NCBI GenBank assembly: GCA_904063045.1
Contig: CAJFCJ010000029.1
Location: forward strand, 310,001-374,000
Direction of reading: 5' to 3'
DNA from: Dimorphilus gyrociliatus
Lineage: Eukaryota > Animalia > Annelida
DNA: 64,000 nt
Below are positions 2,823 through 22,011 of the stretch, piece by piece (the first letter of the stretch is position 1; each line of letters opens with the position of its first letter). The position numbers were made by a program, and so were the translations under genes. Under the pieces are notes generated by a model. The model had not been told where the DNA came from. It saw only the letters and a list, made by a program, of their open reading frames with translations, and made no database searches.

Positions 2823-4836
2823 ATGGCCGATAATGAAGATCAAAGCGCTCTACAGCCACCTGATTATCCAGTCTCCCCTCCTCCAACGTTTGCCCAAGCT
2901 ACCCAAGCCACTTCAGCTTTTATCCATCCAGCAGTTATACATAAGTCTCCACTCGACAGATCATTTTCCGTGCCATGTAAATCACAATCAAACGACAGAA
3001 CTTGCCCACCAAATCCTGCTAACGTTCAACTGACCGTTGATGAGATGGAAGAGACCTGTGACTTTCCAAATCGTCACGTTCCATCAATTGACGAGGCCGT
3101 AACCCCACCAGTGACTCCAAGTAGACCTACTTTAGGTTCGATTTTTAAAGGTAGAAGGTTACCTAGTCTAAAACTGAAAAGAAATCGAATGGGATCTATT
3201 CGATCACACAAAGGTTCTGAACCACCCTCACCTGTGACTTCAACACATGGGCCTACAATAACCGTAACTGGTGGATCAGATGAAGAGGCTACATCGATGA
3301 TTAGCGACTATTTGTCACCCGATAAATTCAATTACAAACGTGAGGCGAAATGCCATTTTATAGGCGATGATGTTAGCTTATACGGTACTCCAAAGGAAGA
3401 ATATTCACCGGTGAATTTAGGCAAAGAGACGGTAAATAAGTCGTCTGCTTCCTCCTTTCTCAAGGATCAAATCATTTCATTCTTTCAACCGTCCGATAAT
3501 AAGTTGGCTATGAAATTGTTTGGAAACAAGAATGCATTATTAAAAGAAAAGATGAGACAAAAAGCAGCAGGAAACTGGGTAATTCATCCTTGTTCGAATT
3601 TCAGGTTAGATTGCTTTGCAGACGATCTCGTAACTATAGGTGACATTTGAAAGTTGCGGAGAAATGTAATAAAAAGGCGTCTATAGGCCTGAATTCCTAT
3701 ATATTTGTAGATTGCTGTCGGACATTGCTAAATCGCGCGTTCGACATTTTAGCAGATTAGCGTTGACAAGAAAAGCGCGAAAGAACATTTAGGCGCGGCG
3801 TCTACTAAACTCGCAACGTCAGTTCGCATACAAGTACAGGAAGTGGAGTGCTGTAGCGGCCATTTTCCCTAGCGTTTGTCAGTAAATGTCGAGCCCTGAT
3901 TACATTTGCAGTCTGGTTTTTTTAGGTTGTTTCCCCGCTGAAAGGCTGTTATTACCAGTCTTAAATTCTGCCCCTTTTTTTCTTCCTTTTTCTTTAGATT
4001 TTATTGGGACTTGTTTATGCTCATTCTACTTATCGCAAACTTAATTATCCTACCTGTGGCCATCTCATTTTTCAACGACGATTTATCAACTAGGTGGATT
4101 GTATTCAATAGCGTCAGTGATACGGTATTCCTTCTAGATCTCATCATCAACTTCAGGACAGGTACGTTACTAATGTTTGTTTTAAGATGATGTGTGATGC
4201 CATATAATGAACTACAAGGCAGACAAACATCCACACCTCAATCATTTGGTGTAAATCTTTTATCGTACTTGGTTCTTTTATTTTGTCTTCAAACCCCTTA
4301 TTAAAAATGCCTTGTTAAGATCTTGAAATGAAAAATAATTTCCGACCGATTTAATCAGAGGCAGGAAATTGCTAAGCTTCAGGGAAATTTCTGCTAACAA
4401 CTGATATTTCCGTTGCAATTGACTGCTACTATTCAGTAATATTTTGACCTCATTTAGTACGAAAAGATCTCACCACTAAAATTTGTAAATAAGCCTAAAT
4501 AATATAACAAGATTGACAAGTGTCGTTATACAAATTGACGCAGGTATCATCGCCGACAATTTCGTCGACGAAATAATACTTGAGCCGAAGGAAATCGCTA
4601 AGCACTACTTGAAGACCTGGTTCTTCCTCGACCTCATCTCCTCTATCCCTTTAGATTATATTATCCTTCTATTCTCACCTCAGACCAACATCACGCAGAT
4701 TATTCACATCGGCCGAGGATTAAGAATCTTTAGACTCGTCAAACTCTTATCTTTGCTCAGATTACTTCGGCTCTCGAGACTTGTACGCTACATCAGTCAA
4801 TGGGAGGAGGTAAGTGCATTACTTTCGCATTATTAG

Positions 4837-4884
<48 letters not shown>

Positions 4885-7800
4885 ATTTATATGTATATAT
4901 ATATATATAAAATATATATAGTAGCCAGTTTAGTATATCTTCTTATATTGAATGAAAATTCTTTAAAGTAGATTAATCTTTTTTTTTTACAAATAGAGCA
5001 TATATCATACATATCCACATCTAGAGCATTCACTACTTTTACTTATATTTTAATAACAGATAGGCCTATTAGAGTTTTTAAAGGCGTTTCCAAAAAGCGA
5101 TCTTTGACTTCAAAGAAGAGCTTTTTGTTCTGGAAATTTTTCTAAAAGCACGATTCTATTCTAACTTATTCCTTAAAAAACTTTATTAACAATAACTTGA
5201 AAAGTAAAAAGAAGAACAATGAAAAAAAAATTTTAGTTCTTAGTCAGCAAAAATATTTCTTTTTAATAGGAAATTCTTTTTTAATTTTTTTTTATTTAAT
5301 ATATTATTGTATTTTCTCTTCATGATTACTCAGGATATTGGAAAGGTACTTTTGTCTCTTGTAGAGAAAAAAAAGTTTCATCCTTTTTTTTTTATTTCTT
5401 TTTTTTCCCTCAAATTACAACTTTTAGCTTATTAAATCGAGCATGATAATTTTCTAAAGCTAAAAAAAAAAGGAATTATTGCATTTAAAAAATCATATCT
5501 ATTTAAGCAATTTTTGTCTTTTAGATTATTTGCAAGAGCGCGCGAAGCACGTCACTTTATTATATTACTAAACACTTTGCACACGCGTTTTTTTCTCTCT
5601 CTCTCTCTCTCTGTATTATTTTTTTCTTCCATTCTCTTTATATTATTTTCGATATTAAAGGCTATAAAAGATATTCTCAACCTTTAGTTTTCTTTTACTA
5701 TTACATAGTATGTACTGTAATTGATCCTGTTGCTGGATCTATATAAAAGCTGCTTTTTTAATTATTCTTTGATTTTACAATAATATAGATAATATATATA
5801 GAAAAAATATTAGTCAAAGGATCAGACACAACCTTAATTGTCAAATTTGCAGTTTCTTAGTTTCGCTGGAAAATTCATGAGATTATTCAACTTGGTTTGT
5901 TTGATGCTCTTACTCGGCCACTGGAACGGATGTTTGCAGTGGTTTGTACCGATGTTGAGGGACTACCCTCAGAATTCATGGGTGGCCATTAACGAGCTTC
6001 AGGTAGAGATTTTTCCAAGCGAGAGAAACAAAAACAAATCATGCATGATCTTTATTCGGCCATTGTTTGATAGCATGTTGCATAACTCTGTGTTTCTAAC
6101 TGTTGTTTCTTTATTACTTTTTTTGCTACTATTTCTGTGCTGAAAGTAGGAGGCGCGCGAACAATTCTACCTTTTACGACCAAATAAAAACATGTAATTA
6201 CGTCTACGTACTCACATGTATTAAACCAACATAAAAATAGATGAAAAAATTGATATATTAGCTCATATATCAATATATCAATATACTTTTCTTTAATATG
6301 CTTGTTTATAAAATTTATTGTATATCGTTGTTTTTCTTTCTTCTGAAAATCACAGTTTCTGAGCGTTGCTGGCATGTTTATGAGGATATTTAATCTCATT
6401 TGTCTAATGCTACTTCTTGGACATTGGAATGGATGTCTTCAGTTCCTCGTTCCCCTGTTGCAAGATTATCCCGCCGATTCGTGGGTGTCTATCAACGAGC
6501 TTCAGGTGTGCTTGCATGCTTCCGTAAACCATAATTAAAAGAAACAGGAATCAAAAAATCGACGCCGTCCGTGTTAATTAAAGCGACGTCTGTATAAGCG
6601 TTCCTCTCCAATCCATAGTCGTATCAACTTGTAAAAAATCACTTATATTTCGCGATGACGTCATATCCTTTAATTCCACTCTTCAATATTTTGTATTTAT
6701 ATAAAATGGTTCTGAGGTAATGGAGAAACTATCCACAACTTAATGAGGGAAATAAAGAAGAAAATTACAGAAAATTCGCGGAATATAAAAAAATGTTTCT
6801 TTCGAAAGGGCATCACTTTTAACATTAGCATCAGGGCGACCCCTCGAATGCTGATGTTAGAGCTGAAGCTTATTTAATTATTATTGAATGTATTCATTTA
6901 TCATTCGTACAGAAAGCCTACTGGGGAGATCAGTATACGTGGGCGTTATTTAAGGCACTCTCCCATATGCTCTGCATCGGATATGGGAAATTTCCTCCTC
7001 AATCTACGACCGACGTCTGGTTAACTATGGTTAGCATGTTAACAGGCGCCACGTGCTATGCCCTATTCGTAGGTCACGCAACGACTCTTATCCAATCTTT
7101 TGACACTTCCAAGAGGCTATATAGAGAAAAGGTAAATCATTATACGTTTGTATGTGTGTTCTTCGATCGATAAACGCGCTAAAGTGAATGCAGCAGAAGA
7201 AGGAGTTTCGCCGCCGGCCATTTGCCTTTGATTATTTGGAGTTCGAGTGCGCAACATGCAGTAGTAACTCGCCCACTCCATAACCCTCCCAACCCCGTAC
7301 TTCTTCTCTTGCTAGCCCGTGTAAACTCTTTCATTTAAATTGATAAAAATCTAAAGGAATTTTTTTTTATACCCACTATCTTTACGCTTTGCAGTTCAAA
7401 CAAGTGGAAGAGTATATGATATATCGTAAACTACCCCGGTCTCTTCGTCAAAGAATTTCGGATTTTTATGAACACCGATATCAAGGAAAGATGTTCGATG
7501 AGGAGCGCATTCTATCGGAACTGAATGAATGCCTTCGGGAGGTAATTATCCATAAAAAAAACTTTAAATTAATCGCTTCTTTGGATCGATTATAACGTCC
7601 CTGTACTAAAACGAATAGAGCAGAAAACGGGTACAGCCTTATTCATTCTGCATTGTCATTTTTTTTCTTAATAAGACTAAAGAAACTATTCTTTGCATCA
7701 ATAAAACATAACTATTATTAACTATGTAAGGTATCTCGCATTAAATGCTTTATCCTTCTTCGCTAGACTGGATTTCTTCTTATAAGCAGTTTTTTTTCGT

Positions 7801-8763
7801 TTTAGCAGAAAAATGTTTATAAATAATCTAAAAGAAATAAAATTGTAGCTTATGTCATATACGTCATAACAACAGGCTATATAACGTTGACTTATTATGT
7901 TGTATATTCTTTTATCATATAAAAGACGGTCAAAGGGAGACTGAGACGGATTTGTGTTACCATGGACGCTATCATCCCGTGTCAGAAAAAGAGTCAATGA
8001 CTTTCATATCATATCTTTACTATTCTTTACAGGAAATTGTCAATTTCAACTGCCGAGCATTAGTCGCCTCCGTACCATTTTTCACTCATGCTGATCCAAA
8101 TTTCGTTTCGGATGTTGTAACGAAATTACAATATGAAGTTTTCCAACCGGGAGATTTAGTGATAAAAGAAGGAACGATTGGAACGAAAATGTATTTTATT
8201 CAGGAAGGAATAGTAGATATAGTTACGAAAAACGGAGAAGTTGCCACTAGTTTGAGTGATGGAAGTTACTTCGGCGGTAAGCGCATTTACCATGTTTGCC
8301 TCTTCCCTTTTCTTTATAAGATTATTTTCACAAAGAAATCTGCCTACTTACAAATGCGAAACGAGTAGCGTCCGTTAGAGCGGAAACCTACTGCAATTTG
8401 TATTCTCTGTCAGTCGAACACTTCAACTCTGTATTAGATCATTATCCCGTAATGAGACGAACAATGGAATCGGTAGCCGCAGAACGCTTGAACAAAATAG
8501 GTAAGAATCCATCGATTGTGTCTAACAGAGCTGAATTGGAAGAAGATATAAACACCGTCAATGAATTGATAATGCAAACAACACCTTTGGCGTCATCTGG
8601 CTCCGAAGGGTCTCTTACTAACATTGAGGAGGAAAAGGCCAAATTTTCTGACGACATGGACGAAGAGATTCGCAAACCAGCGCTCAAAAAATCCGTTTCG
8701 GACTGTTTAGTCTCTCGCCATAGAAGTTCACCAACTCAACCTGATAAGGAATCTTTAGTTTGA
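2823..8763 (+). CDS. HCN: Hyperpolarization-activated cyclic nucleotide-gated channel (Ih)
   Basis: Exons 2823-3604, 3998-4161, 4544-4809, [5853-6002 or 6356-6505], 6913-7131, 7395-7541, 8033-8276, 8336-8763; all GT-AG and phase-compatible. Motifs: HCN domain ([16 protein letters not shown]-type, [14 protein letters not shown]), S4 [23 protein letters not shown], pore [12 protein letters not shown]-linker, CNBD ([20 protein letters not shown]). In-frame TGA at 2814-2816 precedes the ATG. Confidence 0.96.
4840..4921. repeat. (TA)n microsatellite in HCN intron 3
   Basis: Visible TA run. Confidence 0.9.
5853..6002 (+). CDS. HCN: HCN alternative exon 4a (S4-S5 linker end, S5, turret)
   Basis: ttgcag| 150 nt |gtagag; [50 protein letters not shown]. 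Confidence 0.9.
6356..6505 (+). CDS. HCN: HCN alternative exon 4b (duplicate of 4a)
   Basis: cacag| 150 nt |gtgtgc; [50 protein letters not shown]; missed by the ORF track. Confidence 0.92.
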
Positions 8764-11266: not shown

Positions 11267-14200
11267 TCAAGCAAGTCGAAGAGACTTATTGGCGGTTAAG
11301 CCCAATGCATGCAGTTTATCTGGCTCCGAAGAACTTCGCCTCTTAAGAAGGCCACTCTGTTGATAAAAAAAAATCCATGGTAAAAATTAAATTATGTTAG
11401 ACCTCGTCTTTTTATCTATTTCCCACACATACCAATTTCTGCAGTTCGTGATTAATTTTCGCAAAATCCGCTCGATCTTCTGGTTTCTGATACCAACATC
11501 GCTTGATAATTGTCTGTAAAATAAGAAATTAATTTTCTCTTTCATTATTTCTACATTTTATTAATTATTTGCCTCAGGTACTCGTTTTTTTGATGATATT
11601 TACAAGAGTAGACAGAACGATAAAGGTTAAAAGATGTAAAGAGAAAAAAACTTACTTTTATTCCTTTAATATCGTTGAATTTTGATAAAGACTGACGTTT
11701 GCCCTGAGACACTTGCCATATTACAGTTTCTGGCGAAACACCTCTATAGGGATAGCATCCTGACATCATTTCGTACAAAAGAGTTCCAAAAGAGTAGATA
11801 TCAGTCGCTGCAGTATATGGTACTTTGGGTACCAGTTTAGGTGGGATGACACGCAACGACCTCATCATTTCCGGAGCAACGTACGTCAAATGGCCATTTG
11901 GTATACAACCATAGCCGGTTTTGTCGTGTTTCATTTCCGCCATTCCATAATCATTGAGGCATAATTTTACTTTGCTTTCAAGGAAAACGTTCTTAGAGTT
12001 TAACTTTTTCATAGGAATCCCTCGAGCATGTAAATAGCCCATTGCCTGCGAAACTTGTTTAGCTATACTTAGTTTGTAAGACAAAGTCATTACACAAGAT
12101 GAAGATTGCGGCTGCCTTATTTGCTCGTATACAGAAATGCCCTTACGCATCCCTGTAACAATAGCTAAATTAGGATGATCGATGCATGCTCCCATAAATA
12201 AAGCAATGTTATCATGTCGAATCATGCACATTCTCGATACTTCTTTCAGAAATTTACTATAAATTTCCTCAGAGTTTTTGGCATTTCCTTTCCGATAGGT
12301 GTGTATTATAACGTCGCCATAATAGCGCCCTCTGTATGTTTCCCCTCGACGACCTACTCGAATTAATTTTCCAAACTCCAGGTCGTTGTAAGGAATAGTA
12401 CACTCTTTAATGGTCTCATTTAAATCATTGTCTTCAAATACCGATTCATCGGGATCACCATCTTCTATGCCCTCGTCTTCTTCTAAAAGTAAATAAGGAA
12501 TACAATAGTATTACTATAGTAAACCAAATGCACTATAATTTATTTTACTAACCTTTTCCATTACACGACTTTCGACATAATGGGGGCCAGGTGGCGCAAA
12601 TAGAACCATGTCCTTCGCTTGTTAAATCTGTCAAGGAATGAGTCGCTAAATTCTTCCTTCCCGGACAAGAATATGAGTGGCTAAGTACTCGATGATGAGA
12701 TGATTCACAATTTACAGAGATTTGAGTAACGTCGCTAACCATTGATGATCTTGTTTGAACGTCGGATGAATTACAACTTAGAGACGCAGTCGTAAAAGGG
12801 AGGTAGGGATCAACAGATGCTACTGGAGATGAAGCACTAGAGGCAATTGTTAAAGAAGAAGATGTACGAGATGTGTGACTAAATGAGACAAAATCTGAGT
12901 CCTCTGATGACAGGCTAGAAGGGCAACATTTATGCAAATAGGCGTTTGAATGCTCCTGAGCCAATGCTAATTGACGACGAAATTGTTCCTTTATTTCAGG
13001 TGAAATACTTTGCCGTCTCATAATATCTACTTCTCTCTTCGCTCTATTTGTTGCTACCCATTTGCAGAATTTCGCATATAAACTAGATAAAATACCCGAT
13101 TCCCTCTTCGGGGTTGGAGTTCCAGGCCTACTGCACTTGGTTTCATTAGCTTGGAGGACCTTCTTCCAATGCTCATCACCCGTTGGTAGTGACGTTTTAC
13201 CATGACTAGACCGCCGACTATTGCATGAAGTACTGCTTCTTCGACGACAGCAATTTGAACTGCAAAAAAATGAATACACTATAATTTAGCATTAAACTTT
13301 GATGGAGAAACACCCCCATACATTCATAAATCTAAATACATATCCAGATAAATATATATACAGTATGCCGTATATATAATTGTGGTTATTTATATATATT
13401 CTATATATAATTTTGCTGTATGCTGTATATAGTTTCTTACGGTATACTTCTTTTATTAATGGAATAATGTACGTTAAAACGTCACATATATTCCTTTCTT
13501 ATTTCTTTTAATATATATATATATATATATGTAGATATATTAATTTCATTTATAGCTGACATACAAGTATTAATATGATCGTCAAAAAAATCCGCTAATT
13601 TGATGACAACCAACTAGCATCTTCGGTCTGAAATGAGTTCCTGCATAAATTAAACCCTGGCTATTGCTTCTAAAACGTTCCACCCGACACAATTATCGGA
13701 CACCATCACATGATGTCATAGGTTTTTAAAATCGTATTTTTGCGCTTAACCAAAAAAGAGGTCGAAACAGATGTTTCATTAAATAGCTGAATAGTATCTC
13801 TCTAGCACTTACAATTATTTTTCAATACGTCAGCAAGTTTTAATAAGCTAGTAGTTATTATTATTAATTCAAAATTAGCAACCGTGCTAAGGAAGGCGAT
13901 ATTACAGTCATAAGAGACGCTAATTGAAAAAAATTTAGGCTTGATTACTCACCAACACCTATGGCGACATTTTGACGATTTGCATTTATGACTGGAGCAA
14001 CTGCATCTACGTGATCCGTTCGAACTTGCGGATAGACTGTATAGAATGAGAGAATTAGAATAAAAAGGACTGGAACAATATTTACAAAAACAACATTAAA
14101 TAACAATATATAAATAAATGCAATTTTCCAGAAATATCGATGGATAGAGAGAAAGAAATATTTTTTTTATCTTATTCTATTCTATTATGAGAACCTGTTG

Positions 14201-14331: not shown

Positions 14332-15811
14332 CGTCTATGGCGGCCGTCGACGTAATTTTGCTGAACGAGTTCATTTTTGTAGCAGATGTTCAACACGCAA
14401 CGTCAAGCAAGCCTATAGTAAGTTGTGCCTTGATGCACACATCGAACATTTGGAAATCGAATAAATATGCATAAGGTGCGTTTAAAGAAAACAGTCAAAA
14501 TAGGCTATATACTAACGGCTTAAATTGTCTTATAAGCATAAAAATACGTCCACTTCCTTTAGAGTTGTATTGCGGGGGTATTGATTCCATATTTTTAAGT
14601 CAAAACGATGACCTGTTTGATCGACATTGTTGTCAAATGTACATTGACGGACTATTTAGAAATACGAAGAGGGTCGCGTTGTTCAATACTGTTTATAGCG
14701 TTCAATAGTACATTGAACTGTTAAAAGTGTAGGCGTAAGATTCCTCCGATAGATGGCGAATAATAGATCTCCTCTTTCTCAATTATACAATAGAAAAAAA
14801 ATGTGAAACGATGCAGGGAAGGGTTGCAGGGTGATGACCGCAATTTCTCATGAACCTCAGATTTTTGGTAAAATGGGCTATATCAGGTTGCGGAAGAGGT
14901 TTTGACAAAAGATAATTGAAACGATAAGAGAATTAATGCATATTCTATTACAAATCACATTTACGTCGTTTTTTTAGTCTTAATACAAAGGTCTAGTGCA
15001 AATAAATAATACTAACCGCTTGTTGATAGATTGGAGTCCAAGGCCCATAACTCGAACGTCTAGTCAGCAAACCAGTTCGAAGGTGCGACTAACACAGCAG
15101 CGCCACCGAACTGCAATAACTGCAAGCAATTTGGATCCAGGCACGCCAAAGAAATTCTAATTGGCAAAGAGAAAAAAAATGCTATGTTGCACTTAATTTA
15201 CTCTCGAAATACTAAGTCTAATATTCTTCCTATGTTTCTTGTAAAAATAAAAAAAATACGCTATTTCTTTATTTTTATACTCAGTTGTCATTTGCTCAAT
15301 ACTGCTGCTCTATGATAAATCAATACGACCATAAATGGATCAGCCTCATTCGAAAAACGTTATGCTGTTCATTTCATTCTCCTGCAAGTTAATCCAGGGA
15401 CATGCCTCTAAATATAGGATAATTCATCAATAAATTGGCCTAAGCATTACAAACAGCTAACGCCCACGCTTCGTATGTTTCTGTCAAAGTGTCATTGGCT
15501 TCGCGAATTGTTGTGTTGAAAAAAAACACGTTTGTTACAAATTACGCAATTATCTTTTACAATTATTTTTCGTTACAATTTTTGAAGGCTAGTCAGCAAA
15601 TTCCGCTTTTCAAGTTTATTTCAGAATTGCATTAATAATGAGATTGTTGGCAAAAATGGGGCCAATAGTTGTAAAATAACGGAAATAATGCTGTTTAATT
15701 AACTTGCAAAGTCTAACAAGAAAACATTGAGGAGCGCACATGAATTAAGAAGAAAACATCATAAAACTCTGATAGGCAACACCTGAGAAAATTTGTTTTG
15801 GGATTTAACAG

Positions 15812-15861
15812 TAGATGGCGCGTTGTCTGTGATTTGTGAAGTTCTAATTACAAGATGGCGT
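15812..15861 (+). promoter_or_regulatory. Two CTCF/YY1-like motifs just upstream of PKG exon 1a
   Basis: TAGATGGCGC at 15812-15821 and AAGATGGCGT at 15852-15861. Confidence 0.55.
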
Positions 15862-15966
15862 TATGGGCCAAGTTAATGAATTGTTGGCATACAAAAGTTG
15901 GCCGGCCTAACGTTCCACAAGAGGCCGTCGTGTATAACGAAAAACAGTAGGAAGAAACGGCTGGAA

Positions 15967-16214
15967 ATGTCTTCCACTGACTTAAAAATCCAGCTGAAAA
16001 GGCGAGATGAGGAAATCGAGCAGCTAAAAAGCCGTCTAGCCGAAAAAGATGATGAATTGGAAAAGTTACGAGTACTTGTGGATCAGTACAAGAGTGTCCT
16101 GGAACCTTCGAGTGGTGCTACAGGTCCCCGCCAACGTGGCGTTGGGATATCGGCTGAACCACAAGCTAAAAATATCGAACAAAGGCCGCTTCAAGTGCAC
16201 AACAAAAGCGAAAG
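15967..16214 (+). CDS. PRKG1: PKG alternative first exon 1a (I-alpha-like leucine zipper)
   Basis: [34 protein letters not shown]...[14 protein letters not shown]...KSE; donor AG|gttagc, phase 2. Confidence 0.88.
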
Positions 16215-19200
16215 GTTAGCCGCAGTACGCGATTGTCATTGTTTCTGTTATAGTGCCGTCTGTATAACTATTCGTAATCATTTAAGAGAAAAATGTAGTT
16301 CTAAACTATTCGCCGTTCAAACCAACTTCTTCGACTTGAGCTGACTGGCATTGTGATTAATAATCGCAAACTGTTTACATTGTCAAGCAGTATTCTAGGT
16401 CGTTTTTATATCAATTGGAGCTTGTTCCGTTCGATAACGATTGACATAGATATTTTTGCGCTAAATGTAAAATACTCCAGACTAAACTGGAAGTGCACAG
16501 TTTTAAAAATAGAAAAAGTACGCGCCCCGCACAACTCAACTCTCCTAGACTTTTTCTCACCTTTCTTACGCCATCTTTCGGATGTTAAAAGCAAAATTCG
16601 CAGAAATGCGAGCTGACATTAACGCTTGAAAGGTGTCGCTGCAATCGAAGTTTGCCGATAGTTGGAAGAAGGATGGCGTATACCCTGCGAGAATTGCAAT
16701 TCGTCCTGCGGCAAAAGGTCGAAGAGATTGAACAACGAGACGAACTAATCGACGAGCTTGAGAACGAAATCGATAAGAAAGATGAGATTATAAATCGTTT
16801 ACAGAATGAGTTAGACAAATGCCGGAGTGTATTAAACACAAAAGTTTGCCAGTGTTCTTTTAAATCAGTAGATGAAAAACCAAGAAAGAAAAGAACAGCT
16901 ATATCAGCTGAGCCTCCAAAAACTCTTCTTTCTTTTCCTGCCCGTGTCCCAAAGGATTCCGCGTGAGTATCGAGAAAGGCTTGTACAAAGAAAAGTTAAA
17001 ATTGTAGAATTTGGAAAAGAATATAGTATGTCTACTACATTTTCCCGAGGTTTTTATTGTGTAGAATATCTAACTAATGAGAACAATGAACTTGAGAATT
17101 TTCTATGAGAGTATCTCAAAGAATGAAAGAGAAAAAAAGTATGGGAGGGGGGCTCATATATATAAGTAGAAAAAAAGATATCTAAGAAAAAATCACCAGG
17201 CCTCCATACTCCCGAAATTACCGCTTTTATTACTTCCATCCGCGTAACGGCTAGCAATAAAATAACTGTATTGGGTGGAATTTTTGAGTATATAGGTCTA
17301 AAGTATTTTACTTCAAGTACATACTTGACTGTCGGCAGCGTCGCTAAGAATTTACGAGACGCCGTTAGATGCAATGAGTTCATGAGTCGCTACGACGATA
17401 TACTAATATCGCAAATGGTTGATTGTATGAGATCGGAAACTCGAGAAGCCGATGAGGTTATTATCAAGGAGGGAACTTTCGGCGATAACCTTTACGTTCT
17501 TGAAGGTACAAGGAGATCTATTACAAAAAAAGATTGATCGCTTATTAGTTCGTTTCATCATTCACTATTATCCAGTTTTTGTGCTCTATTAAGCTGATCC
17601 TGAACGTTTACCGCCATTTAATTAGATAAATACTGCTTATATGAAAATTTCCACTTTTGCTGCTTTATGTTGTTTTTTTTTACGCTTTCAACAGATCGAA
17701 GGAGATAATCGGCAATGCAATACTGGATAATGATTTCATGAAGAATCTTGAAAAAGCTCAGATCAATGAGATTGTCGATTGCATGTATAAAATGGATTTT
17801 AAATCTGGACAAATGATTATTAAAGAAGGCGATGTCGGCTCGGAAGTATACGTTATGGAAGGCACGTTCATTATATTAGACGCCTTTACCTTGTTGTCAG
17901 TAGGGATATAATCAGCATGTTATCCTTATAAATACTAACATAAACAAGTGTGTAAAGGCGACTAATTGCTTTAGTTTTGGTCATTTCTCTATTGAGGGAA
18001 GGGACAGCAGCCTGTCATATTTAAATTGGGCTAAACCTCGAGAAATGCAGTGTGGTCAATTCGTCGATCGTTTTGATCATGCATCGTGTGACCACAAACT
18101 AATTTCGTTTTTGCTTCGAGCGCGCTTTATAAAATACAGAACGACTTTTCATTCCATTTGACTTTGTTAGCTGCCATATTCATCTACTTTCCTGCCAATT
18201 ACGTAATGTTTCCTTTTCTTGTTTTAAACATTTAACAGAGGGTCAAGTTCTCGTAACTAATAATAAGAAACTCGAGCGTAAAATGTCGGCCGGAAAAGTG
18301 TTTGGTGAATTAGCCATATTGTACAACTGTAAAAGAACGGCTTCTATTAAAGGTTTGTTTCCCTTTGGGAGTACACAGCTTTATTTCTAAATACATTTTC
18401 TCACGCCATTTTTTTCTAGCGATAACCAATTGTAAGCTATGGGCTATAGATCGGCTAAATTTCCAAAGTATTATGATGAAAACTGGGATGAAAAGACGAG
18501 AAGAGTACATCAAGTTCTTAAAAAGGTAAAAGCCAGTATATAATTAAACGTAATTTACGTCCTGTTCTACGATTCTCTCTTTCTTCTTTCTTTCACTCAA
18601 TATACAGCATTCCACAATTTAACAACCGCAAAGAGGAAACGCTAGGATCGATTGCCGACGTTCTAGAAGAAGTCCATTTTGAAAAGGATGAATATATCAT
18701 TCGACAAGGTGCCGTCGGCGATACGTTCTACATAATAGCTAAAGGACAGGTCAGTGTATATGTTTTATAGGCGTCCTAGATATTTTTTGTATGGATTTCC
18801 ACTATTGCCGAATGGACGGCGTCGTTAAACATATTTCGAACGCGACGTAATGCGGTTTGTCGTTCGAATTCTCGCCGGACTATGCGACTTCGTCGAAAGA
18901 ATTAACGTATATATCGATTACGCAATATAGGCGAAGGAAACTGAGGGTACCGGTTCAACAGAAAAGACGAAAAAAACTCTCAAAGTTGGAAGCTGGTTTG
19001 GTTTGGCCGCACTGGAAAGGTTTTAATAAGCGTGTGTTTTTTTTCTATATTTATATAAAAAATGTTTTTTGTTTTTTTTATTTTCACGCGAAACATTTGC
19101 AGTGTTTTACAGTTATATTATTTATTTTCCTCACTATCTCTATCTGTTTTTCTCTTTCACCTCCTTTCTGAAACTTCCTAGGTTCTGGTTACGAAAAACG

Positions 19201-22011
19201 GTAACAATAACGATGAACCTGATTTCAAACCGAAATTCTTGAAAAGGGGCGATTATTTCGGAGAGAGGGCACTCGAAAGGTATATTTTTCCCTGTCGAAC
19301 GGCCATTTCCAGCCATTATTTATCTCATTTTATCATTATCTTTTTTTCGGCTTTGTCTTATAAATTAGCTTTTCTTTTGAAACACAAAAAGAAAATTGGA
19401 AGTAAAAAAAAAAAGCAAAAAAATATTCCAGATTTCTTATTTTAATTTGCTGCTTTTTTGACGTTTTTTTAAAAAAAAATTAATAAGCTACAAACAACTA
19501 AGAAAGACAAGAAAAATATGTTTTTTTTTCTTTTTTTCTTTTGTTTTCTATAGGGAGGAGACACGATCTGCAAATATTATCGTCACTGATCCTAACGGAG
19601 TGGATTGCCTCCAATTGGAAAGAGAGTAAGTTTTTTACACTCTTTAAATATCATTCGCATAATAAATTGAATATACTTTTACAATACGGTCAATGTAGAG
19701 GGAGACGTTTACCCTTGAGACGTTTTCCTTCTTGTTTATACATGCTACTTCGTACAACCGTATATAATTTCCGGAGAGAAGCAGTGAAAATCTATTCACT
19801 CATTGGTCAATTGAGCAAGAAAAAATAACAGGGTTTTGACCTAAAGCTCAAATTAATTACCTATTAACGCTAAATTAGGTCTATTTATCAGCGACTATTC
19901 TTTGAGCCACGACCGTCGCCTAGTCGGTGATAGTTCGGCCTGATAAGCATAGAGTGGAAGGACAAACAAGCGCGTTTGTTAGACGCCGATAAAACCTAAA
20001 TCTATTAAATTGTCGTATTTTTTATTGCAGCGCCTATAAACAGATTATCAGCCACATAATATCGCCAACCGTACCTCGTATGAGATCGTTAGAAAGGTAA
20101 GTTGGCCAACAATCAATAGTCGGTTGTCTGCATTAAAAAAAAAAGAAGAAAACGTAACACAACAAGAGCTTAGGGAATTTTTTTTGAATAGTGGTCGAAA
20201 CGAATTCAGCGATATAAAACCTAGCGATTTATCGAGCTTGAAAACATTGGGAGTCGGTGGATTTGGTCGCGTCGAGTTGGTAAGCCATTAGATGGCGCCA
20301 CTCTGTCCTAATTTTCACGTAGGCCTATAATTTGGAAAAATATTTCACCTTCCTATTTTTTACATCTTAAAACTGAAGCCTTTTTTTCACACTAATTTAT
20401 ACTCTTTATGTTCTCTTTTTTTTTGTTTTCTACAGTTTTTTTTAAGTAGCTGACCGCTTCAAAAGACTGAAAACTATCTGAGAAAGTCGTGAATGCTATT
20501 TTGATTTGTATTAAATATAATATTCTCACGATTCTTGTATAGTTTTCACTTTTTCTACTTTCTATTATTATTTGTTTTTACTCTCTAAATTGTGTTGTGC
20601 ACTCTGTTTTTTCTCTATACTTCAGCGATTCCCCTGCTAGCCTAATTGGTATTCAACTTTCCAAGTTTAACTTTATCACAACCCTCGGTGTAGGTGGATT
20701 CGGCCGAGTAGATCTAGTAAGTGTCCTAGATATTGTAAACAAAAAAAAATAAGAAAAAGAAAAAAACTAATAAAATTCTTTTTTTCTTCTCTTCTTTGGG
20801 CAGTCTATTTTTCTCTTTTTAATCAAATATTTTCCTTTATTAAAAAAATATAAAGTAATAATAAAATCTTAAAATAACTAAATTAAATTGATAAATTGAC
20901 TTTTGTATATTTATACAACTTTATGAATATCTTATTATTCTTGAAAACATAAGATATTCTATATAAATATACAAGGAAAAGAAAACATTGAAAATAAAAA
21001 TTAAGTGTTGAGGGAATGTTTGTTATCTCTAAATATTTTTGCAGGTTTGCATAGGAAAGGATAAAGCAAAAACGTTTGCCTTGAAAAAGTTGAAAAAACA
21101 ACATATAGTCGATACAAGGCAAGAAGAGCATATCCTAAATGAAAAGAGAATAATGCAAAAAGCTCGATGCGATTTTATCGTTCGATTATACACAACCTTC
21201 AAGGATGCCAAATATCTCTATATGCTGTTGGAAGTTTGCCTGGGAGGTGAACTGTGGAGTCTACTAAGGGATAAAAGTCACTTTGACGATTCTATGACTA
21301 GATTCTATACTGCTTGCGTATGCGAGGCCTTAATTTACTTACACGGTTTAGGCATTGTATATCGGGATTTAAAACCAGAGAATCTTCTTTTAGATACGTC
21401 CGGTTTTATTAAGCTCGTCGACTTTGGATTCGCAAAAGAAATAGGACATGGGCGTAAAACTTGGACATTTTGCGGAACACCCGAATATGTTGCTCCAGAA
21501 ATCATATTGAATAGAGGTCATGATTTATCGTGTGATTTATGGTCGCTAGGAATCCTTATGTTCGAATTATTGACGGGAAATCCCCCATTCTCTGGAGCGG
21601 ATCCAATGAAGACTTATAATATTATTCTTAGAGGAATTGATGCAATTGACTTTCCTAGACGAATTACAAGACATGCGCAAAACTTGATTAAGAAATTGTG
21701 CAGGTAAAACTATATTAAATTAAAAAAACAAGGTGTAATAAATATGTATTATAAAATGATTCTTTGTTAATTTTTGCCTTAGGGATAATCCTACAGAAAG
21801 ATTAGGCTACGGAAGAGGAGGAATTAAAGATATACAAAAGCACAAATGGTTTGATGGTTTCAATTGGGAAGGCTTGAGAAGAAGATCCTTGAAACCACCG
21901 TACGTTCCGAAAGTTATGAGCGCGTCTGACGCTTCAAATTTTGATGAGTATCCTCCAGCAACCGAGCCAGAACCTCCAGATGATATTTCTGGATGGGACA
22001 AAGACTTTTGA
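15967..22011 (+). CDS. PRKG1: cGMP-dependent protein kinase type I-like, with four alternative exon pairs
   Basis: Exons [15967-16214 or 16673-16962], [17339-17505 or 17695-17861], 18239-18352, 18420-18525, 18608-18749, [18931-19019 or 19182-19279], 19554-19625, 20031-20096, [20192-20279 or 20626-20716], 21045-21703, 21783-22011. Leucine zipper plus ISAEP autoinhibitory site, two CNB domains ([14 protein letters not shown]; [10 protein letters not shown]), kinase ([40 protein letters not shown]), C-terminus SGWDKDF*. Confidence 0.96.
16673..16962 (+). CDS. PRKG1: PKG alternative first exon 1b (I-beta-like leucine zipper)
   Basis: [54 protein letters not shown]...[12 protein letters not shown]; donor GC|gtgagt, phase 2. 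Confidence 0.92.
17339..17505 (+). CDS. PRKG1: PKG alternative exon 2a (CNB-A N-terminal half, divergent copy)
   Basis: 167 nt, phase 2 to 1; [55 protein letters not shown]; donor gtacaa; weak pyrimidine tract. Confidence 0.8.
17695..17861 (+). CDS. PRKG1: PKG alternative exon 2b (CNB-A N-terminal half, canonical copy; GC donor)
   Basis: 167 nt, phase 2 to 1; [31 protein letters not shown]...[15 protein letters not shown]; the homologous donor is AAG|GCACGT. Confidence 0.88.
18931..19019 (+). CDS. PRKG1: PKG alternative exon 6a (CNB-B beta-strands and PBC start, divergent)
   Basis: aatatag| 89 nt |gtttta, phase 0 to 2; [29 protein letters not shown]; 3' end GCACTGGAAAG is almost identical to 6b GCACTCGAAAG. 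Confidence 0.72.
19182..19279 (+). CDS. PRKG1: PKG alternative exon 6b (CNB-B, canonical FGE)
   Basis: ttcctag| 98 nt |gtatat, phase 0 to 2; [32 protein letters not shown]. Confidence 0.9.
20192..20279 (+). CDS. PRKG1: PKG alternative exon 9a (kinase beta1 and glycine-rich loop)
   Basis: ttttgaatag| 88 nt |gtaagc, phase 2 to 0; [29 protein letters not shown]. Confidence 0.87.
20626..20716 (+). CDS. PRKG1: PKG alternative exon 9b (kinase beta1 and glycine-rich loop)
   Basis: tacttcag| 91 nt |gtaagt, phase 2 to 0; [30 protein letters not shown]. Confidence 0.87.

Follow-up and report, generated by a model that had tools for sequence, protein, structure and literature searches.

Four alternative exon pairs in a PKG-I-type gene of the annelid Dimorphilus gyrociliatus

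Mammalian PKGI and Drosophila FOR, both cGMP-dependent protein kinases (PKG), have isoforms that differ only N-terminally, and the difference between mammalian Iα and Iβ is confined to the first ~100 residues (PMC10299703). In mammalian PRKG1 two mutually exclusive coding first exons each supply a zipper and the autoinhibitory ISAEP segment, and the cyclic-nucleotide-binding (CNB) and catalytic domains are the same in both isoforms. Here we describe a PKG-I-type gene of Dimorphilus gyrociliatus, at positions 15967-22011 (+) of a 64,000-nucleotide stretch (contig CAJFCJ010000029.1, positions 310,001 to 374,000, assembly GCA_904063045.1; hereafter the window), which has a first-exon pair like that of PRKG1 and, unlike PRKG1, varies three internal sites more. 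The Drosophila foraging gene likewise yields many isoforms from one PKG-I-type gene, through alternative promoters and not through internal exon pairs. The PKG1 isoform sets of molluscs (Patella, Haliotis, Mercenaria, Dreissena, Mytilus, Pecten, Argopecten, Crassostrea, Octopus and Mya) comprise one α-like and one to four β-like first exons, with no alternative exon 2, 6 or 9, unlike the gene of the window. The statement of the initial annotation, made by a model from the letters of this DNA alone, that PKG isoforms elsewhere vary at the N-terminus is thus borne out by the cited source and by the mollusc sets.

Beyond PKG, the nearest likeness is in the related AGC kinase gene kin-1 of C. elegans (PKA catalytic subunit), whose alternative exons at several sites give at least 12 isoforms (PMC3771449), with the variation at the N- and C-termini of the catalytic subunit and not in cyclic-nucleotide-binding domains. 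Classical clusters of mutually exclusive exons (e.g., in ion channels, Dscam and 14-3-3) have the same tandem, homologous exons of equal phase, one per transcript, and conserved flanking introns as the locus described here. In Aplysia, a mutually exclusive cassette lies inside the catalytic core of PKA-C. The searchable literature yielded no paper that links PKG to mutually exclusive exons, in keeping with the initial annotation, which knew of no such description; the internal sites 2, 6 and 9 are therefore new in the sense of being absent from that literature, and site 1 is already known in kind.

From reading of the sequence, three-frame translation and splice-site checks, we obtained a gene of 15 exons, all on the + strand, with tandem duplicates at four sites (1a/1b, 2a/2b, 6a/6b and 9a/9b), and it is likely that this one PKG-I-type gene is diversified by mutually exclusive splicing at all four. 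The alternative coding first exons are 1a, of the Iα type (15967-16214, 248 nt, with an ATG start and a GT donor in phase 2), and 1b, of the Iβ type (16673-16962, 290 nt). The second pair consists of a divergent copy, 2a (17339-17505, 167 nt, AG/GT), which encodes the N-terminal helical part and β1-β3 of the first cyclic-nucleotide-binding domain (CNB-A), and a canonical copy of the same element, 2b (17695-17861, 167 nt), which is followed by a GC-AG intron. Constitutive exons then carry β4-β7 and the cGMP-binding loop of CNB-A (exon 3, 18239-18352), the end of CNB-A (exon 4, 18420-18525) and the start of the second domain, CNB-B, through its β3 (exon 5, 18608-18749). The third pair encodes β4-β6 and the first half of the CNB-B binding loop, in an alternative version with the motif WFGLAALE (6a, 18931-19019, 89 nt, AG/GT) and a canonical one with YFGERALE (6b, 19182-19279, 98 nt). 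Two further constitutive exons supply the second half of that loop (R-S-A) with β7-β8 (exon 7, 19554-19625) and the C-terminal helices of CNB-B (exon 8, 20031-20096). The fourth pair, 9a (20192-20279, 88 nt) and 9b (20626-20716, 91 nt), twice encodes the linker, kinase β1 and the glycine-rich loop; the bulk of the kinase domain follows in constitutive exon 10 (21045-21703), and the AGC C-terminal tail with the stop codon in exon 11 (21783-22011).

AG acceptors and GT donors flank the internal exons throughout, with the GC donor of 2b as sole exception, and the phase is identical between the copies in each of the four pairs. Since none of the lengths of exons 2, 6 and 9 is a multiple of three, including both copies would amount to 334 nt at exon 2, 187 nt at exon 6 or 179 nt at exon 9 and shift the frame, and skipping both does likewise, whereas all 16 single-choice combinations leave an open frame with products of 659-677 aa. 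The four pairs with matching phases, the equal length of 2a and 2b and the frame shift on joint inclusion had all been proposed in the initial annotation; they hold, with its coordinates right to a base or two. In searches with exon peptides (tblastn) of the 64-kb window, the partners found each other at 1a/1b (E=2e-6), 2a/2b (E=1e-8) and 9a/9b (E=6e-5), and protein identity between copies is only 37-60%. The likeness of 6a and 6b is weak (E=0.17, 60% over the last 15 aa), and their pairing is based on position, phase and the common motif G-x-[WY]-F-G-x-x-A-L-E. The same searches gave no extra copies of exons 3, 4, 5, 7 or 8 in the window.

For the use of each copy in RNA, we placed Logan contigs from four runs (X1, X2, X4 and X5) on positions 15750-21700; some of the runs that contain window sequence are labelled as coral or marine metatranscriptomes, and Logan contigs drop rare variants and cannot link distant sites. 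Contigs of X1, like a part of those of X5, match the window at 99-100% identity, and those of X2 and X4 belong to a related lineage that is 5-10% diverged. Exon 1a is joined to 2a in X1, X2 and X4 and to 2b in X2 and X5, and exon 3 is reached from 2a in X2 and X4 and from 2b in X2, X4 and X5, the latter with a cut that fits GC..AG and so confirms the GC donor. Exon 5 is joined to 6b in X1, X2 and X4 and to 6a, among the joints listed, in X2 only. Exon 8 is joined to 9a as well as to 9b in X5, with matching loose ends of exon 8 in X2 and X4, and exon 10 is reached from 9a in X2 and X4 and from 9b in X2, X4 and X5. Contigs of exon 1b are present in X2 and X4, and in X4 a loose end of 31 nt leads from 1b into 2b-like sequence. 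The constitutive joints 3-4 and 7-8 were found in all four runs.

Within X2, the depths of the two copies were comparable at the internal sites, at 276 (2a) versus 268 (2b), 389 (6a) versus 554 (6b) and 409 (9a) versus 184 (9b), so that 6a takes ~40% of the exon-6 junction depth, and at the first exons 505 (1a) versus 26 (1b). Spliced joints that involve all copies of all pairs (for 6a in one run), together with the conservation described below, exclude dead duplicates, the outcome that would have undone the proposal. Each copy is spliced in singly, as expected of mutually exclusive exons, and no joint including or skipping both copies of a pair is among the joints listed, from contigs that drop rare forms; to this extent the exclusivity claimed in the initial annotation stands. 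Its figure of up to 16 isoforms agrees with the 16 open combinations and is to be read as a ceiling and not as a finding, because short-read contigs cannot link distant sites.

We then compared the locus with a 19-kb Logan genomic contig of a sister species (L001, identical to L002), reached via the open reading frame (ORF) of exon 10. The window is collinear over 9.6 kb with this contig (83% identity), and all 15 exons, including the eight alternative copies, align to it without gaps and with the same splice sites, the GC donor among them; the introns show indels. The ratios of nonsynonymous to synonymous substitution (dN/dS, Nei-Gojobori, window versus L001) are 0.07 for 1a, 0.08 for 1b, 0.10 for 2a, 0 for 2b (100% aa identity), 0.25 for 6a (76% aa identity), 0.03 for 6b and 0.014 for the constitutive exon 10. 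At 9b the ratio is 0.35, from four changes (93% aa identity), and 9a has no synonymous and three non-synonymous changes, too few for a ratio (90% aa identity). In 6a the splice sites, the length, the frame and the Leu of WFGL are retained in L001. The organism of X2 and X4 has only 18 of 40 listed variants in common with L001 and must therefore be a third lineage, in which the changes in 1a, 1b, 2a and 2b are, among the changes listed, mostly synonymous. The proposal of a combinatorial PKG gene with four alternative exon pairs is thus confirmed, with the pairs expressed and conserved under purifying selection. We also noticed that the synonymous divergence (dS) from L001 is very low (0-0.1) in exons 3, 5, 9a and 9b and 0.3-1.4 in the other exons, which suggests constraint at the nucleotide level, e.g., by splicing signals inside these exons.

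The assignment of the gene product to PKG I was made from several matches. Its closest full-length relatives are named cGMP-dependent protein kinase 1 (60-63% identity over ~680 aa; ~62-63% for those of Lingula, Patella and Solemya); the representative P0001 proved to be a chimeric model, PKG-II-like, and was rejected. Exons 1a and 1b both encode a coiled coil and the pseudosubstrate ISAEP (GISAEPQ in 1a, RTAISAEP in 1b). Exon 1b matches the Pfam family PKcGMP_CC (PF16808; 40.5 bits, cut-off 35) and shares 56-60% identity with the N-terminal ends of β-type mollusc forms and of vertebrate proteins of 686 aa (Iβ size). Exon 1a has generic coiled-coil matches only in Pfam, and its nearest N-termini are those of 671-673-aa (Iα-size) vertebrate and α-type mollusc forms (E 1e-13 to 1e-15 against Iα-type N-termini). 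Judged from these similarities, pair 1 is the known Iα/Iβ first-exon switch. Two tandem CNB domains with loops of the type FGE…R[ST]A are present and match PKG I CNB-A and CNB-B in the PDB (exon 5 also matches Pfam cNMP_binding, E=1.9e-5), and a kinase domain (exon 10, Pfam Pkinase PF00069, 214 bits) and an AGC tail stand on the same polypeptide. With a coiled coil and pseudosubstrate, two CNBs and a C-terminal AGC kinase, the predicted product is of the PKG I type.

As to what is exchanged at the internal sites, 2a and 2b both fall on one stretch of 51-55 residues in human PKG I, which begins at the end of the linker and runs through β3 of CNB-A (2b against human PKG I CNB-A, E=1.9e-20; 2a against PKG I CNB-A in the PDB, E=1.6e-7). 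Exons 9a and 9b align to one and the same segment of human PKG I, and 6b matches PKG CNB-B segments in the PDB. The view that each pair encodes one structural element twice therefore holds for 2a/2b and 9a/9b, and for 6a/6b it is weak by sequence alone. The phosphate-binding cassette (PBC) of the first domain, PBC-A, is located in constitutive exon 3, so that exon 2 carries N-terminal helices and β1-β3 and not the CNB-A cGMP-binding loop, contrary to what had been supposed; PBC-B is composed of FGERALE from 6b and REETRSA from exon 7. The GVGGFG loop is identical in 9a and 9b, which differ in the ~18 residues before it (linker and β1) and in the residue that follows RV, E versus D. Hence, of the initial claim that the pairs span both cGMP sites and the kinase glycine-rich loop, the part on the CNB-B loop (exon 6) stands, and the parts on the CNB-A loop and on a varied glycine-rich loop do not. 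Only the pair 6a/6b alters a loop that contacts the ligand cGMP, and 6a puts a Leu at the invariant Glu of PBC-B (WFGLAALE versus YFGERALE in 6b). The cAMP-binding loops of Epac are also without this Glu, yet bind their ligand.

Several features of the introns bear on how one copy per pair would be chosen. The inter-copy introns are 189 nt (2a-2b), 162 nt (6a-6b) and 346 nt (9a-9b) long, the shortest intron of the gene is 67 nt, and no U12-type donor was found in the sequence of the gene; both steric exclusion and U2/U12 incompatibility are thus improbable. The only exclusivity mechanism with direct support from the sequence is incompatibility of frame, with decay of the transcript to follow. 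Unlike in the classical clusters, docking/selector pairing is not demonstrated here, most inverted repeats in the three clusters being A/T runs. Introns around the pairs are 85-94% conserved against L001 (2a-2b, 89.5%; 5-6a, 92%; 6a-6b, 86%; 8-9a, 85%), compared with 53-70% for the remaining introns. Directly after 2b, 106 nt (17862-17967) are 97% identical in L001 and contain a hairpin just 3' of the 2b donor (17875-17966, +), with 15-bp arms (17875-17889 and 17952-17966) that are 93% complementary to each other and both identical in L001. In the fold of 17850-17975 (dG -32.6 kcal/mol, z -2.9) the GC donor of 2b is paired, and we regard the hairpin as a candidate for the regulation of 2b. The predicted folds of introns 5-6a and 8-9a do not surpass those of shuffled sequences, and no Rfam family was found in the conserved introns. 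A stretch of ~170 nt upstream of 2a (17171-17338) is 92-94% conserved with the sister species and open in the 2a frame; as coding sequence it was rejected, its substitutions being without third-position bias, and it is probably a regulatory intronic block rather than coding.

Taken together, the expected course of splicing would be as follows. At site 1, the ancient Iα/Iβ choice would decide between first exons that each bring a start codon, a zipper and an autoinhibitory segment. Site 2 would swap the N-terminal helical motif with β1-β3 of the first cGMP-binding domain; site 6 would swap β4-β6 and half of the binding loop of the second, where 6a would offer Leu for the ribose-contacting Glu; and site 9 would swap the linker and the first strand into the kinase N-lobe. 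Exclusivity would be enforced at least by frame, as transcripts with both copies or neither shift frame and should trigger decay, and the choice is probably guided by the conserved introns around the pairs, among them the one whose hairpin covers the weak GC donor of 2b. The isoforms probably differ in cGMP sensitivity, cooperativity and the coupling between regulatory and catalytic parts.

A number of points weigh against mutually exclusive splicing at all four sites. The only joint of exon 1b in X2 (16961>17296, depth 26) is out of frame: it uses an acceptor 43 nt upstream of 2a, and the region so added (17296-17338, +), which lengthens 2a by 43 nt, shifts the frame into a stop at 17345-17347 on translation. 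The AG acceptor of this site is kept in L001, and such a transcript would either be a target of decay or yield a peptide of zipper plus pseudosubstrate. The contig data leave the actual isoform set and the absence of double inclusion weakly based, and the evidence comes from RNA and DNA. Substitutions in 9a and 9b are too few for a meaningful dN/dS, and the hairpin arms, being invariant between species, are without covariation support. Among the joints listed, exon 6a occurs in a single run, from a related species; it has the highest dN/dS listed apart from 9b, and a conserved binding residue is replaced in it.

This last point belongs to the alternative that survives best, namely that some copies, above all 6a, do not end up in a working kinase, being either decaying duplicates spliced in as noise or the source of a cGMP-blind or dominant-negative isoform. 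Such a 6a would fit its occurrence in X2 only, its weak similarity to 6b, the change of the invariant Glu to Leu and its faster divergence from the sister species. Against decay stand its share of the junction depth in X2, the splice sites, length, frame and Leu kept in the sister species, and a dN/dS well below 1, and we consider this alternative improbable.

The copies could also be tied together along the transcript, as two coordinated kinase flavours only (1a-2a-6a-9a versus 1b-2b-6b-9b), which the initial annotation had raised as one possibility. All four 'a' and all four 'b' exons are indeed present together in X2, as two such flavours would have it. The combinations found in X1, X2 and X4 contradict the arrangement at sites 1-2, 2-6 and 6-9, with an outright refutation from these contigs for sites 1-2 and 2-6. 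In X2, the joints from 1a to 2a (depth 257) and to 2b (268) are nearly balanced. Equal depth of 2a (33) and 2b (34) is found in X4, where 6a is absent and 6b stands at 93, and in X1 2a was found with 6b only; 2a must therefore travel with 6b in these two runs. Both 9a and 9b were found with 6b only in X4. From the run data, the links 1a-2a, 1a-2b, 1b-2b, 2a-6b, 2b-6b, 6b-9a and 6b-9b must all exist, and a gene restricted to two linked flavours is very unlikely. Choices at different sites are not rigidly coupled. That the duplication of exons is a product of assembly, or of collapsed alleles or paralogues, has practically no chance of being right and had been thought unlikely from the outset given the divergence of the copies: besides that low identity, the layout recurs in an independently assembled contig of a related species, and each copy is used in spliced RNA. 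As all copies are spliced in RNA and conserved in the sister species, we read them as live mutually exclusive exons, neither dead duplicates nor artefacts of assembly.

To see how far this arrangement extends, we compared PKG loci elsewhere, and the internal pairs found no match in the isoform models of the ten molluscs or in ~60 further PKG loci and transcripts, except for a second, unannotated copy of exon 9 in the PKG1 loci of two annelids, Capitella teleta (L005, 17393-17480 and 17673-17766) and Lamellibrachia satsuma (L003, 5269-5356 and 6120-6216). Like 9a/9b, these are tandem and phase-compatible copies, with AG/GT sites, the same phase and an upstream copy of 88 nt as in 9a; they are known from genome sequence alone, unlike 9a/9b. 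The upstream copies of both annelids are the more diverged ones, with the motif TIG.GGFGRV[HN]L. A precursor of site 9 may thus exist throughout annelids. In Capitella, exons 2 and 6 were found in single copy, and the Lamellibrachia locus examined stops short of those exons. In Lingula there was no second copy of exon 6, the other recovered exons were single and exon 2 was not recovered by the scans; in Daphnia pulex the exons found were in single copy. The isoform sets of the ten mollusc species differ in the first exon only, apart from an 8-aa insert in Patella and a 2-aa insert in Mya, and the database models X2 and X4 of Patella differ solely in the first exon. Each of ~60 sequences from JGI metagenomes, PKG1 transcripts as well as compact genomic contigs, has one canonical exon 2, 6 and 9. 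An ORF search for 2a-like sequence matched the sister species only, a weak result in view of its word-based sensitivity and length filter.

These comparisons also brought up variations of other kinds. Lingula PKG1 has two copies of one exon that are alike at the protein level (L004, 31262-31345 and 32551-32634), either a recent tandem duplication or a duplication in the assembly. In bivalve PKG1, beside one α-type first exon, there are four β-type first exons in Mercenaria, three in Dreissena and two each in Mytilus, Pecten, Argopecten and Crassostrea; going by these database isoform sets, first-exon arrays are larger there than the vertebrate α/β pair. The insert of the Patella vulgata isoforms lies within the kinase domain (NKVHENEKT for K; P0418/P0417 versus P0310/P0305) and looks like a micro-exon or an alternative splice site. 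A compact animal PKG locus from metagenome contigs (L060/L071) has two tandem exons for an N-terminal coiled coil (~4187-4384 and ~5707-5955), probably alternative first exons, and its exons 2, 6 and 9 are single. Within the window itself, the PKG exon peptides weakly matched two separate genes, the CNB domain of a neighbouring HCN-type channel gene (8048-8379, +) and a kinase-like segment (11701-12054, -).

Going further than four mutually exclusive sites, we can only tentatively suggest that the internal choices are regulated independently, by tissue or stage, through the intronic elements, and that the gene would thereby supply a graded family of PKGs. In such a family, 6a would give a noncanonical site B, leaving site A to act alone or accepting another nucleotide, 9a and 9b would differ in coupling, and the exon-9 switch would be an old annelid-wide feature that annotation has missed.

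Mutually exclusive exons are plentiful in this genome as a whole, which means that the mechanism as such is no novelty. What changes is the picture of the kinase: described PKG isoform diversity has been confined to the N-terminal ~100 residues, and the cGMP sensors and the kinase core have been treated as fixed. Internal alternative exons of a well-studied kinase can escape annotation pipelines, as in the case of the annelid exon-9 copies. In essence, defined sub-elements are swapped in matched fashion while the rest of the protein stays identical, a ready-made experiment on cGMP affinity, cooperativity and autoinhibition.

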